Assembly: GCA_002269645.1 (NCBI GenBank)
Contig: NIVC01000392.1
Coordinates: 570,850 to 634,849 of the forward strand
Source: Macrostomum lignano
Lineage: Eukaryota
Direction: 5' to 3'
Length of the DNA stretch: 64,000 nucleotides
Part shown: positions 46,601 to 54,040 of the stretch, one piece after another
How the letters are laid out: every line of letters starts with the position of its first letter
How positions within the stretch are numbered: the stretch's first letter is position 1
Program-made: the position numbers and the translations under genes
The notes under the pieces: model-generated
What the model was told of the DNA's origin: nothing
Database searches by the model: none
The model's input: the letters and a program-made list of their open reading frames with translations, nothing else

Positions 46601-49463
46601 TCTAACATAAATTCGCTTGCAGTCCGCCCGCTTGAACACGGGAGCATAGGCGGCTGCGGCGGCGGCGCCCTGGTCGTCCGGCGCGGCGGCCGTGTCCGAG
46701 TTCGGGTAACTGTTCGCGTCCCGGCGTGGGCGGGCGCGAAATCGCATCGGCTGGGCCAGTGGGGACGCGGCGGAGGCGTCGGTTGCTGCTGCTGATGCAA
46801 CGCCGCCCGTTAGCTTGCCGGTGGCCCGCCAGGCCGGCGTGACAATTGGCCTGCGGATCGGATTGGGATTCTGTCTGTGTGTCTGTGTGTCTGTGTGTCT
46901 GTGTGTCTGTGTGTCTGTGTGTCTGTGTGTCTGTGTCTGTGTGTCTGTGTGTCTGTGTGTCTGTGTGTCTGTGTCTGTGTGTCTGTGTGTCTGTGTGTCT
47001 GTGTGTTTGTGTGTCTGTGTGTCTGTGTGTCTGTGTGTCTGTGTGTCTGTGTGTCTGTGTGTCTGTGTGTCTGTGTGTCTGTCTGTCTGTGTCTGTGTGT
47101 CTGTGTGTCTGTGTGTCTGTGTCTGTGTGTCTGTGTGTCTGTGTGTCTGTGTGTCTGTGTGTCTGTGTGTCTGTGTGTCTGTGTGTCTGTGTGTCTGTGT
47201 GTCTGTGTGTCTGTGTGTCTGTCTGTCTGTGTCTGTGTGTCTGTGTGTCTGTGTGTCTGTGTCTGTGTGTCTGTGTGTCTGTGTGTCTGTGTGTCTGTGT
47301 GTCTGTGTGTCTGTGTGTCTGTGTGTCTGTGTCTGTGTGTCTGTGTGTCTGTGTGTCTGTGTGTCTGTGTATCTGTGTGTCTGTGTCTGTGTGTCTGTCT
47401 GTCTGTGTGTCTGTGTGTCTGTGTGTCTGTGTCTGTGTGTCTGTCTGTCTGTGTGTCTGTGTGTCTGTGTGTCTGTGTATCTGTGTCTGTGTGTCTGTCT
47501 GTCTGTGTGTCTGTGTGTCTGTGTGTCTGTGTGTCTGTGTGTCTGTGTCTGTGTGTCTGTCTGTCTGTGTGTCTGTGTGTCTGTGTCTGTGTGTCTGTGT
47601 GTCTGTGTGTCTGTCTGTCTGTCTGTGTGTCTGTGTGTCTGTCTGTCTGTCTGTGTGTCTGTGTGTCTGTCTGTCTGTCTGTGTGTCTGTGTGTCTGTGT
47701 GTCTGTGTGTCTGTCTGTCTGTCTGTGTGTCTGTGTGTCTGTCTGTCTGTCTGTCTGTCTGTCTGTCTGTCTGTCTGTCTGTGTGTCTGTCTGTCTGTCT
47801 ATGTGTCTGTCTGTCTGTCTGTCTGTCTGTCTTAGTGTCTGTCTGTCTGTCTGTCTTAGTGTCTGTCTGTCTGTCTGTCTTAGTGTCTGTCTGTCTGTCT
47901 GTCTTAGTGTCTGTCTGTCTGTCTGTCTGCTGTCCGTTTCTGTCTCTCACTTATTGGGATCGACAGGCGCGGCAGCCCGTCTCTGCCTAGTGGAGCACAG
48001 GTAGTGCCCCTGATTGTCGAAATCCTCCAACGAGCTGAGCCTATCGCGGCCTCGCGGCGTGAAGACGGCCCGAACTCCGTAGCTCAGCTCCGGCATTCGG
48101 TCCGTCAGCTCCGTCAGCAAGGCGTCGAAGCCTCGATAGCGATTGGGGTGGATGGCCACCCTGATCGGCTGCTTGAAGGTCACGCCGTCCCGGTGGAAAT
48201 ACACCGTCTTAGCCTGCTTCGGCCGGTTTGACTCGTTGCTAGGGCCGAAGTCTGCGGCAGTGCCGGCAGCCGCAGCCGCCCCAGCCTCTCCATGGGTGTC
48301 CCCGGAGCCGTTCTCTTCGCCCTGCTGCTGCATGTCGAACTCGGCGAACTCCGGTAGCGTCAGGTTCCTGAGGCTGTCGCTGTCAGCGCAGCTCTCCTCC
48401 GTGTCGCTCGGCCGCCTCAGCTGCCGGTTCCGCTGCTGCTGACGATGGATTTGACTGGGATTTGAGCTCACTTCCGATGGGGTCTGCTCCACTGCCGACT
48501 GGGGCCAGGGTGTGCTCACTCGGTGACCGGATTCTTCGTTGGTGCCGTTGTGATCCTGCTGGGAGTGCGACTCCGCGTCGTCTGCAATTATAATGAGTAG
48601 TAGTAGTAGTAGTAGTAGTAGTAGTAGTAGTAGTAGTAGTAGTAGTAGTAGTAGTAGTAGTAGTAGTAGTAGTAGTAGTAGTAGTAGTAGTAGTAGTAGT
48701 AGTAGTAGTAGTAGTAGTAGTAGTAGTAGTAGTAGTAGTAGTAGTAGTAGTAGTAGTAGTAGTAGTAGTAGTAGTAGTAGTAGTAGTAGTAGTAGTAGTA
48801 GTAGTAGTAGTAGTAGTATTAGTATTAGTAGTAGCAGTAGTAGTAGTAGTAGTAGTAGTAGTATTTAGTACGAGCTTAGAGTAGTAGTTGTGTTTTTGTA
48901 GTTTTTGCACTTCTTGTTGTCGTTTGATTGTTTAAAAATTTTTACGGTACATCCAAAAAGATTACGGAAATATAATTCTAACAATTTGAATCCCTAACAA
49001 CTTTGTTGACCAAGGAAATTTGATACTTTGTCGATAGACGAAGCGGAATTCGAACAGATTATGACAGGGCGTCAGTCACCTACGCGGCTGAAAGCAATTT
49101 TGTATACATTATTTCGTATCGAAAATCTGACACATCGATACATGTAGATTCATTGTTAGATAGATAGATAGATAGATAGATAGATAGATAGATAGATAGA
49201 TAGATAGATAGATAGATAGATAGATAGATAGATAGATAGATAGATAGATAGATAGATAGATAGATAGATAGATAGATAGATAGATAGATAGATAGATAGA
49301 TAAATAGATAGATAGATAGATAGATAGATAGATAGATAGATAGATAGATAGATAGATAGATAGATAGATAGATAGATAGATAAATAGATAGATAGATAGA
49401 TAGATAGATAGATAGATGGATGGATGGAATCCCCTGAATCGCTTCTAACTGCTTACCCATCAT
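16084..49463 (-). CDS. RP1: RP1-family protein: 2 doublecortin + 2 beta-trefoil + about 14-15 PLAT/LH2 domains, 27 coding exons, about 2,940 aa
   Basis: GT-AG exons with consistent phases: 49457-49463, 47951-48581, 46463-46850, 43461-43668, 42836-43017, 41889-42114, 40125-40318, 39315-39472, 38757-38980, 37902-38005, 36346-36747, 35326-35503, 33979-34295, 31660-32052, 30198-30432, 29391-29426, 29250-29309, 27866-27892, 24668-24924, 24028-24154, 22708-23900, 21854-22066, 20762-21175, 18929-19595, 17708-18301, 16758-17599, 16084-16632 (TAA). DCX1 has the RP1/RP1L1-type GVR-x-x-x-TPRG...YLCS signature. Junction 23/24 and the acceptor at 18301 are less certain. The symbol means RP1/RP1L1 family; orthology untested. 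Confidence 0.88.
16758..18301 (-). CDS. RP1-like exons 25-26 (17708-18301, 16758-17599): PLAT domains, split by a 108-nt intron
   Basis: LHGDLGESG...[16 protein letters not shown]...[11 protein letters not shown]; matches ORF 16734-18332. Confidence 0.88.
18345..18850. repeat. Degenerate about 20-bp intronic repeat (TTTGGGATTCCTCAATCTGG-like)
   Basis: Read directly. Confidence 0.85.
18929..19595 (-). CDS. RP1-like exon 24: PLAT domains
   Basis: [11 protein letters not shown]...[11 protein letters not shown]; [16 protein letters not shown]; GTGAGG donor. Confidence 0.85.
19610..20735. repeat. 24-bp intronic minisatellite (AACAGGTGTGAGACTTCAGTGTCT)n
   Basis: Read directly; fills almost the whole intron. 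Confidence 0.95.
20762..21175 (-). CDS. RP1-like exon 23: PLAT
   Basis: [13 protein letters not shown]...[11 protein letters not shown]; donor either at 20762 or at 20752. Confidence 0.8.
21290..21615. repeat. 13-bp intronic repeat (GAGATACCAGGTT)n
   Basis: Read directly. Confidence 0.9.
22708..23900 (-). CDS. RP1-like exon 21: about three PLAT domains
   Basis: ORF 22687-23862: [39 protein letters not shown]...EAVDLGSL; AG at 23901-2, GTAAGG donor. Confidence 0.92.
24408..24627 (-). mobile_element. tRNA-derived SINE, family 2
   Basis: Minus-strand head with A-box-like TAGCCCACTGG and B-box-like GGCTCGATTCC, (AATGTACAT)n tail. Homologous copy at 44124-44275 and a fragment near 30628-30668. 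Confidence 0.65.
25045..25320. repeat. 14-bp intronic repeat (CCGAGAGGTAGATT)n
   Basis: Read directly. Confidence 0.93.
26469..27053. mobile_element. MITE with long imperfect TIRs (about 170-190 bp), probable TA target duplication
   Basis: TATACCTTTTAGCGATC...GCCCATAGCAA at left; inverted copy TTGCTATGGGC...GATCGCTAAAAGGTATA at right. Confidence 0.8.
30885..31622. repeat. 12-bp intronic repeat (GACCACTTAGAT)n
   Basis: Read directly. Confidence 0.95.
32325..33190. repeat. 21-bp intronic repeat (GGCGCTAAAATGAGTGCCTGT)n
   Basis: Read directly. Confidence 0.95.
33405..33978. repeat. 18-bp (2 x 9) intronic repeat, minus strand GTATGAGTA/GTGTGAGTA
   Basis: Read directly; starts at intron position +1. 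Confidence 0.95.
34325..34570 (-). mobile_element. tRNA-derived SINE, family 1, with conserved central domain
   Basis: Head TGTAGCCCAGTGCTTAGAGCG...GGTTCGATTCT, then GAGCAAGACACTTAAC...CATCCAGCTGTAAAATGGGTGCC. The 3' part recurs on the plus strand at about 41638-41728. Confidence 0.75.
34870..35310. repeat. 21-bp intronic repeat (AAACAGGTGTCTAAAGTACGG)n
   Basis: Read directly. Confidence 0.95.
35326..38980 (-). CDS. RP1-like exons 9-12: two tandem beta-trefoil (FGF/fascin-like) domains
   Basis: [18 protein letters not shown]...[16 protein letters not shown]...[17 protein letters not shown]; [28 protein letters not shown]...[32 protein letters not shown]. The fold call is by pattern only. 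Confidence 0.65.
35985..36330. repeat. (TAGG)n microsatellite
   Basis: Read directly. Confidence 0.95.
36785..37275. repeat. 31-bp intronic repeat (TCAGTTGCTGGGCCACCAGCCTCCCAGATCC)n
   Basis: Read directly. Confidence 0.93.
38215..38705. repeat. About 61-bp intronic tandem repeat, about 8 copies
   Basis: CAGCTCTTTCTGCCGCCTTATCTCGGCTAGGTCACACACCCTCCCCATTGCAGCCATAGACA units. Confidence 0.9.
39315..43017 (-). CDS. RP1-like exons 5-8: PLAT domains 1 and 2
   Basis: [10 protein letters not shown]...[14 protein letters not shown]...FQAGQEDEF; [31 protein letters not shown]; [19 protein letters not shown]...[12 protein letters not shown]. Confidence 0.92.
39590..40010. repeat. Degenerate purine-rich about 40-bp repeat
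   Basis: GAAGCACCAGTGATGGAAATGAGGAAYATAGG units. Confidence 0.8.
42165..42750. repeat. 10-bp intronic repeat (GATTAGCAAT)n
   Basis: Read directly. Confidence 0.95.
43781..44085 (+). mobile_element. Solo LTR related to the 8814-10554 element
   Basis: TGTCGCGA...TTACA aligns by eye with the reverse complement of LTR 8814-9122; 5-bp TSD GTATT (43776-43780, 44086-44090). Confidence 0.88.
44612..44625. promoter_or_regulatory. Perfect RFX X-box GTAACCATGGCAAC in intron 3 of the RP1-like gene
   Basis: Exact match to GTNRCC-N0-3-RGYAAC; function untested. Confidence 0.55.
45025..46040. repeat. 20-bp intronic repeat (CCTCCCCTGACACTCCACTG)n
   Basis: Read directly. Confidence 0.95.
46463..46850 (-). 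CDS. RP1-like exon 3: second doublecortin domain (completed by exon 43461-43668)
   Basis: [52 protein letters not shown]|VESL...[12 protein letters not shown]. Confidence 0.9.
46872..47935. repeat. Compound (CTGT)n/(CTGTGTGT)n microsatellite filling intron 2
   Basis: Read directly. Confidence 0.95.
47951..48581 (-). CDS. RP1-like exon 2: first doublecortin domain
   Basis: [10 protein letters not shown]...[46 protein letters not shown]. Confidence 0.92.
48596..48865. repeat. (TAG)n microsatellite
   Basis: Read directly. Confidence 0.97.
49157..49425. repeat. (GATA)n microsatellite
   Basis: Read directly. Confidence 0.97.

Positions 49464-54040: not shown

Follow-up and report, generated by a model that had tools for sequence, protein, structure and literature searches.

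A window of 64,000 nucleotides from the flatworm Macrostomum lignano (the whole stretch analyzed here: contig NIVC01000392.1, positions 570,850-634,849, forward strand) carries two genes that start head-to-head, 1.8 kb apart. From profile and alignment evidence, the gene on the plus strand is identified as the probable flatworm orthologue of human C8orf74, a predicted CLAMP and coiled-coil protein of about 300 amino acids (aa), and the gene on the minus strand encodes a predicted giant protein in which a tandem of DCX domains runs into an array of PLAT repeats. At the level of this DCX tandem, the minus gene is placed as co-orthologous to RP1 and RP1L1. A survey of other animals supports the view that the linkage of the two genes predates the split between Spiralia and Deuterostomia and represents ancient microsynteny. 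With a probability of roughly 0.5, the pair would have been retained through shared cis-regulatory DNA, located within the short intergenic region or close to it.

The two start codons lie at 49463 (minus strand) and 51275 (plus strand), a separation of 1812 bp. An earlier reading made from the letters of the window (hereafter the sequence-only reading) had described these divergent starts, and the arrangement was confirmed by the sequence together with the splice models. At the start of the minus gene, the sequence on that strand is ...GGAAG ATG ATG G and then the donor GTAAGC. Its two ATGs, at 49463-49461 and 49460-49458, are the last codons before the exon boundary at 49457, beyond which 49456-49455 supply the GT of the donor; an in-frame TGA stands 14 codons upstream of the ATG. 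The plus-gene ATG is the first one past an in-frame stop. The interval between them is as follows:

49464-51274, no strand: intergenic region between the start codons, 1811 bp, 37% GC, candidate bidirectional promoter

The window as a whole is rich in microsatellites, minisatellites, and retroelements, and a repeat scan of 49464-51274 returned nothing notable. An Rfam scan gave no match in this interval and no RNA family in the window. The stretch from 45008 to 64000 aligned at 99.7% to the first 19 kb of a second M. lignano contig, NIVC01002513.1.

For the plus gene, a five-exon GT-AG model was built, and its translation was 100% identical to the NCBI protein BOX15_Mlig001478g2 (337 aa). The exons of this C8orf74 homologue are the following:

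51275-51346, plus strand: exon 1, MTEILSG...QGIE (splice model matching the NCBI protein)
51557-51752, plus strand: exon 2, start of the CLAMP domain (Pfam, splice model)
51917-52377, plus strand: exon 3, end of the CLAMP domain, RHFALY motif, coiled coil (Pfam, alignment, splice model)
53119-53260, plus strand: exon 4, second long helix, LPRP motif (alignment, splice and AlphaFold models)
53898-54040, plus strand: exon 5, GPPPRY motif, basic tail, stop codon (alignment, splice model)

An exhaustive phmmer search with this protein against 1.8 billion representative proteins returned 21 proteins at E <= 1e-3, most of them about 300 aa long and aligned over most of their length. The matches named by their source were mostly called "uncharacterized protein C8orf74 homolog", one was called "C8orf74-like", and three had generic names; neither CABCOCO1 nor CFAP119 occurred as a name among the 21. 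The species named were Lingula, Littorina, Magallana, Tubulanus, Pecten, Watersipora, Lineus, Haliotis, Ptychodera, and Mya, and Amphiura and Gigantopelta came from a further homologue search. A 16-sequence alignment and family profile were built from the window protein, placed first, together with 15 relatives. The alignment was collinear from the CLAMP domain through a C-terminal LPRPxxLGPPPRY motif to a basic tail, and the motif was common to the window protein and the spiralian and hemichordate homologues. When the profile was compared by hhalign with human C8orf74 (NP_001035121.2/Q6P047, retrieved by exact look-up), the probability was 100% with E 2.9e-42 over 256 columns. Together with the names of the phmmer matches, this result upheld the proposal of the sequence-only reading that the plus gene is C8orf74-like.

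The flatworm protein is a divergent member of the family, as judged from its scores. In BLASTP, the flatworm protein by itself reached only E 1e-3 against human C8orf74, and the Lingula homologue matched the human protein with 31% identity and E 1e-37. Similarly, the Pfam CLAMP model (PF14769) scored the window protein at 18.8 bits, under the cutoff of 22.7, and human C8orf74 at 34.9 bits; a precomputed CLAMP hit was present in most orthologues. A second copy of the homologue was also observed in M. lignano (UniRef A0A1I8J7E3), 93-98% identical by different measures; it is labelled "NPH3 domain-containing protein" and seems misannotated. In addition, a eukaryote from an ENA metagenome carries an intronless 304-aa C8orf74 homologue on two large contigs, at 10001-10915 of the retrieved slices.

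Searches of the PDB linked the family to the central pair of the axoneme. The family profile matched Chlamydomonas FAP114 (C1a-32) with E 6e-15, mammalian CFAP119 with E 1.6e-13, and FAP119 (C1a-34) with E 9e-10. When the window protein was modelled with AlphaFold (pLDDT 75), its significant fold matches were solely to C1 central-pair chains (Chlamydomonas FAP114/FAP119), in 7sqc and 7n6g. The profile and fold matches indicate that the C8orf74 homologue shares both family and predicted fold with the central-pair C1a subunits FAP114, FAP119, and CFAP119; the sequence-only reading had noted a C1a subunit among CLAMP-family proteins. No PDB chain carried a C8orf74 sequence, and human C8orf74 matched solely these three weak homologues. 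Given that FAP114 was the best profile match, orthology between C8orf74 and FAP114 was considered; it was unsupported, as the C1a proteins clustered together (0.74) in a neighbour-joining analysis of the CLAMP domain and fell outside the C8orf74 family. This analysis took in FAP114, FAP119, CFAP119, and the C8orf74 family. The sequence-only reading had named a grouping with CABCOCO1 as grounds for rejecting its proposal, and to this condition the present results speak only indirectly. The literature assigns both algal proteins, FAP114 and FAP119, to CFAP119. Like the C8orf74 family, FAP114, FAP119, and CFAP119 (CCDC189) consist of a CLAMP domain followed by long helices; they also carry an insertion of 8-10 residues that C8orf74 lacks, and the C8orf74 family forms a branch apart from them.

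The minus gene extends leftward from the shared intergenic region, and its predicted features are the following:

49457-49463, minus strand: putative coding exon 1, ATG ATG G and then the GTAAGC donor, in frame with exon 2 across a canonical GT-AG intron
48582-49456, minus strand: intron 1, mostly microsatellite, with (TAGA)n at 49157-49425 and (AGT)n at 48596-48863
47951-48581, minus strand: exon 2, low-complexity N terminus and first DCX (Pfam DCX, E 1.1e-15)
46463-46850, minus strand: exon 3, linker with RP1-type P-x-W motif and first part of the second DCX (Pfam DCX, E 4.3e-8)
43461-43668, minus strand: exon 4, end of the second DCX and linker (paralogue alignment, splice model)
42836-43017, minus strand: exon 5, opening part of the first PLAT, in frame with exon 4 across the splice (Pfam PLAT, 19.3 bits, cutoff 23)
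16087-42147, minus strand: further exons with PLAT repeats and a region that orthologues faintly flag as FGF-like (Pfam PLAT, collinear tblastn)

The 7-nucleotide coding stub of exon 1 splices in frame to the acceptor at 48582/48581, where the exon with the first DCX begins. If exon 1 were wrong, the next in-frame ATG would be at 48331 and the coding starts would be 2.9 kb apart, and the genes would still be divergent. The tblastn matches to Lingula and Pecten stop at the boundary of exon 3, and in these species, too, the remainder of the second DCX lies in a separate downstream frame. Exon 5 and part of the next frame (within 41725-42147) align along nearly the entire PLAT domain of polycystin-1, which was the best PDB match of the first PLAT domain. 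On the minus strand, PLAT matches were located at 41725-42147, 40107-40445, 24482-25351, 22690-23925, and 16087-16635, and Pfam detected at least five PLAT domains over about 27 kb. The stretch at about 35330-38006 (minus strand) was faintly flagged as FGF-like in orthologues.

Several lines of evidence join the DCX and PLAT parts. A single annotated M. lignano paralogue, P0065 (2256 aa), contains two DCX domains and PLAT, and its tblastn matches run collinearly through the window from 48252 to 20825; exon 2 is 67% identical to it. Over the DCX region, the paralogues BOX15_Mlig000902g5 and BOX15_Mlig000902g7 (P0065 / P0003) are 46-67% identical to the window gene, of which they represent an older paralogue. 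Orthologues elsewhere are 2995-5757 aa long and combine DCX with PLAT. The in-frame splices, the collinear paralogue, and the fused models in five other species identify the two parts as one predicted gene, which spans at least 29 kb and probably about 33 kb. The NCBI model on NIVC01002513.1 is 5'-partial, beginning at the first whole codon of exon 2, and is as short as 308 aa because the beginning of that contig falls within intron 3. In the literature, no paper was found that describes a DCX-DCX-PLAT(n) architecture or names the locus tag.

The affinity of the DCX tandem was examined with a distance-based neighbour-joining tree of 24 tandem-DCX regions, for which Reiner et al. 2006 (PMC1550402, supplement) supplied the reference sequences. 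The invertebrate DCX-PLAT proteins and RP1/RP1L1 were separated from DCX/DCLK and DCDC2 with a bootstrap of 84-89%. The window gene, the M. lignano paralogue, the Lingula and Pecten neighbours, and a Logan protein all fell on the RP1/RP1L1 side, and RP1 and RP1L1 were themselves monophyletic (97-98%, likewise by neighbour joining). RP1 and RP1L1 are vertebrate duplicates, which makes the flatworm gene co-orthologous to both. A PDB sequence search with the DCX tandem, tried as a means of telling RP1 from DCX, gave no separation because an RP1 structure is absent from the PDB. On the evidence of the tree, the term "RP1-like", which the sequence-only reading had given to the minus gene, is fair for the DCX tandem; it does not extend to the rest of the protein, a PLAT-repeat giant whose architecture is absent from RP1/RP1L1, where the tandem is followed by a long tail without other globular domains.

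To place the pair in a wider context, the contigs of C8orf74 homologues were surveyed in 12 look-ups with 10-kb flanks each. Gene ranges were taken as coding-sequence ranges, which were checked on the Lingula and Pecten start codons. The positions given are relative to the C8orf74 homologue:

Macrostomum (flatworm): DCX-PLAT gene upstream, head-to-head, ATG to ATG 1.8 kb (1812 bp)
Pecten (bivalve): DCX-PLAT gene upstream, head-to-head, ATG to ATG 1.4 kb (1388 bp)
Magallana (bivalve): DCX-PLAT gene upstream, head-to-head, ATG to ATG 1.4 kb (1418 bp)
Lineus (nemertean): DCX-PLAT gene upstream, head-to-head, ATG to ATG 4.7 kb (4716 bp)
Lingula (brachiopod): DCX-PLAT gene upstream, head-to-head, ATG to ATG 7.3 kb (7317 bp)
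Ptychodera (hemichordate): DCX-PLAT gene on the same strand, its end 6.3 kb upstream, tandem
Tubulanus (nemertean): DOCK gene upstream, pair broken
Watersipora (bryozoan): TCP1 gene upstream, pair broken
Littorina (gastropod): Metallophos gene upstream, pair broken
Owenia (annelid): within 10 kb upstream, no gene called and no DCX by tblastn
Amphiura (echinoderm): within 10 kb upstream, no gene called and no DCX by tblastn
ENA metagenome eukaryote contig: within 10 kb, no gene called and no DCX by tblastn

The head-to-head pair was thus found in five species from four spiralian phyla, and adjacency was also found in one hemichordate. Where adjacency was present and orientation was checked, it was divergent in five of the six cases, with Ptychodera in tandem. 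The same two families being adjacent in six lineages goes beyond chance, which points to a linkage ancestral to Spiralia and Deuterostomia. The sequence-only reading had proposed microsynteny kept since the bilaterian ancestor, with coincidence as the alternative if intermediate lineages lacked the pairing. As regards the bilaterian ancestor, the proposal rests solely on Spiralia and Deuterostomia, the two groups that the survey covered; the pairing is present in the five spiralian species and the hemichordate, and is broken in the three lineages listed above.

At human 8p23.1, as in the flatworm, a tandem-DCX gene of the RP1 family, RP1L1, adjoins C8orf74; we take the human genes to be divergent as well, with a spacer that is presumably tens of kb long compared with 1.8 kb in the flatworm. 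Unlike the flatworm partner, human RP1L1 has no PLAT repeats. The adjacency, which the sequence-only reading had stated, agrees with published gene lists, where the order is PRSS55-RP1L1-C8orf74-SOX7 (PMC8027303) and the same neighbourhood appears again (bioRxiv 10.1101/2020.08.31.275685).

A further neighbour was observed in the survey. Directly downstream of the C8orf74 homologue and convergent with it, Lingula, Pecten, Lineus, Magallana, and Tubulanus carry a WD40 gene of about 325 aa:

WD40 gene, coordinates of the retrieved slices: Lingula 13486-19208; Pecten 19074-25149; Lineus 14400-18107; Magallana 14758-22374; Tubulanus 12546-14746

Its exons are 65-85% identical between the two nemerteans, and Tubulanus has kept this gene and lost the DCX neighbour. 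When the WD40 gene was sought in the window by tblastx, it was absent, the matches being minisatellite artefacts; this neighbour has been lost in M. lignano.

The sequence-only reading had further proposed that a ciliary promoter under RFX control is shared by the two genes, on the basis of a half-site midway between them. The sequence GTTGCTAGG is indeed present at 50289-50297 (plus strand), between the two ATGs. The window has two more copies, at 1008 (within a retrotransposon) and 48235 (within the DCX exon), making three against 0.56 expected by chance. The copy at 50289-50297 is a half-site only, and the adjacent GCGTAG forms no second X-box half. A full X-box was defined as GTTRCY N1-3 RGYAAC, and scans were performed with spacers of 1-3 nucleotides and up to 1 mismatch. 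No X-box within 1 mismatch was found in 49464-51274, in the second M. lignano copy, or in the Lingula, Pecten, and Magallana spacers. The only site in the window within 1 mismatch, GTAACCATGGCAAC at 44612-44625, is a near-palindromic X-box-like sequence in intron 3 of the minus gene, and 1.8 such sites were expected. In Ptychodera and Lineus, X-box-like sites lie about 1.3-1.5 kb upstream of the C8orf74 ATG, so RFX control could apply in those species. For the pair studied here, the window sequence offers no evidence of RFX control, and the shared RFX promoter was not borne out.

Repeats and retroelements surround the pair. The arrays in and beside the two genes are intronic and flanking:

45026-46055: 20-bp minisatellite, 51 copies
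46872-47929: 8-bp-period array TGTCTGTG, 1.06 kb
52408-53078: 18-bp minisatellite, 38 copies
54175-54623: 14-bp array, 32 copies

Contig NIVC01002513.1 begins 18 bp before the 20-bp array, and the NCBI gene model is cut short as a result. At the left end of the window, an uninterrupted open reading frame of 1482 aa (2-4447, minus strand) runs off the edge; it is a polyprotein of long terminal repeat (LTR) retrotransposon type with reverse transcriptase, RNase H, and integrase zinc-binding domains and an N-terminal cold-shock DNA-binding domain (Pfam CSD, E 8e-7). Retroelement debris also lies at 54900-60100, on the downstream side of the C8orf74 homologue, and includes a 581-aa reverse-transcriptase reading frame (58338-60080, minus strand) within a block of 64% GC, probably from a non-LTR element.

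The conservation of the pair could be explained by shared regulation. A bidirectional or tightly interleaved promoter would drive both genes in the same ciliated or flagellated cell types, and the pair would join the "conserved ancestral microsyntenic pairs", within their co-regulated 5'-5' class. Both products come from families associated with cilia or microtubules. Among conserved pairs, those that are co-regulated show an excess of 5'-5' orientation and of short spacers (PMC3514665), and the present pair fits this pattern in five of six cases, from which shared regulation is inferred. Since the half-site is at chance level, a full X-box is missing, and the orientation is not universal, the shared promoter is inferred rather than found. 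A number of observations speak against this explanation. The ATG-to-ATG distances of 1.4-7.3 kb exceed the spacer of <1 kb that is the classical signature of a bidirectional promoter (PMC3514665). Four of the five head-to-head spacers hold no X-box within 1 mismatch, and across the five head-to-head intergenic regions the shared 7- to 9-mers showed no excess over expectation. Exon 1 of the minus gene (49457-49463) is plausible and consistent with the sequence, and it lies outside the 5'-partial NCBI model. The Ptychodera genes are in tandem, and in Tubulanus, Watersipora, and Littorina another gene stands upstream, showing that any constraint can be broken. Finally, most species that keep the pair keep the WD40 gene too, which suggests generally slow rearrangement.

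This last point leads to neutral retention, under which the two genes are neighbours from the bilaterian ancestor that the slow rearrangement of some genomes has so far left together, and have neither shared regulation nor a functional link. Lingula, Pecten, Magallana, and Lineus retain the unrelated WD40 gene, so that the whole block is conserved, and the three broken pairs, the tandem order in Ptychodera, and the want of a conserved intergenic motif are all as this explanation would have it. However, M. lignano has lost the WD40 gene and its downstream flank is filled with retroelements, yet the 5'-5' pair at 1.8 kb was kept; the adjacency also persists in human, the orientation and short spacer are kept in five of the six orientation-checked adjacent cases, and both products come from families associated with cilia or microtubules. 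We regard neutral retention as possible, if on the unlikely side. Regulatory entanglement of the genomic-regulatory-block type, with enhancers of one gene inside the body or introns of the other (the large DCX-PLAT introns, for example), would select against breaks without a shared promoter or co-expression. Such a constraint, a class documented in PMC3514665, could account for an adjacency that persists in Ptychodera although the orientation has changed there, something incompatible with a strictly bidirectional promoter, and for spacers of up to 4.7-7.3 kb in Lineus and Lingula. Neither gene, however, is a developmental regulator of the kind usually targeted by these blocks, and the sole intronic X-box-like site (44612-44625) is at chance level. 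We regard entanglement as decidedly improbable.

The likeness to the human locus might also be accidental, the plus gene being a CABCOCO1- or CFAP119-like paralogue or the minus gene being unrelated to RP1. The window protein taken alone is very divergent (18.8 bits against the CLAMP cutoff of 22.7, and E 1e-3 in BLASTP against human), the CLAMP-domain tree was a neighbour-joining one without CABCOCO1, and the DCX tree rests on neighbour joining with 84-89%. Against such a mis-assignment stand the full-length profile match to human C8orf74, the absence of CABCOCO1 and CFAP119 among the named phmmer matches, the clustering of FAP114, FAP119, and CFAP119 apart from the C8orf74 family, and the same DCX-PLAT partner in five further species, so that it appears very improbable indeed. 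Retention through shared cis-regulatory DNA is the explanation that we prefer.

Literature on C8orf74 is essentially nonexistent, and among papers pairing it with cilia no functional study was found. Its linkage to an RP1-family gene over >500 million years, together with its kinship to the C1a proteins, suggests the hypothesis that C8orf74 is associated with the axoneme and co-expressed with the RP1-like gene. Among invertebrates, the counterpart of RP1/RP1L1 is a DCX-PLAT giant, which alters the view of how RP1 and RP1L1, both retinal disease genes, arose. In a bolder and rather doubtful version, the bilaterian ancestor would have possessed a two-gene ciliary module: a DCX-DCX-PLAT(n) giant linking microtubules to the membrane or other partners, ancestral to RP1/RP1L1 (the PLAT array having been lost in chordates or vertebrates), and an obligate divergent C8orf74, a so far unplaced axonemal protein of the CLAMP family, the two being co-transcribed from regulatory DNA in common and acting in the same ciliary structure. 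If this were true, it would give a function to the uncharacterized human C8orf74 and a candidate link to RP1L1 disease biology. Transgenesis and RNA interference are established in M. lignano, so the 1.8-kb spacer is directly testable as a bidirectional promoter.

Compared with known systems, the minus gene combines features of two protein types. RP1 and RP1L1 are microtubule-associated proteins of the photoreceptor axoneme, and the flatworm gene shares with them two N-terminal DCX domains with a GVR..TPRG motif, the P-x-W...RPxS linker, and the ...VVAG.E.FK ending; its C terminus is a PLAT array, whereas RP1 and RP1L1 have long low-complexity tails instead. The long PLAT/LH2 array resembles that of LOXHD1, a PLAT-repeat protein of hair-cell stereocilia, which, unlike the flatworm gene, is not known to have DCX domains. 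As for the pair itself, the flatworm spacer is >1 kb and the orientation is not fully conserved, unlike in the class described by Irimia et al. 2012 (PMC3514665). As in that class (e.g. HSPE1-HSPD1), two unrelated genes have stayed divergent neighbours across phyla, with a short spacer between them, and the pair is a genuine ancient case of a known kind of feature, the conserved divergent gene pair.

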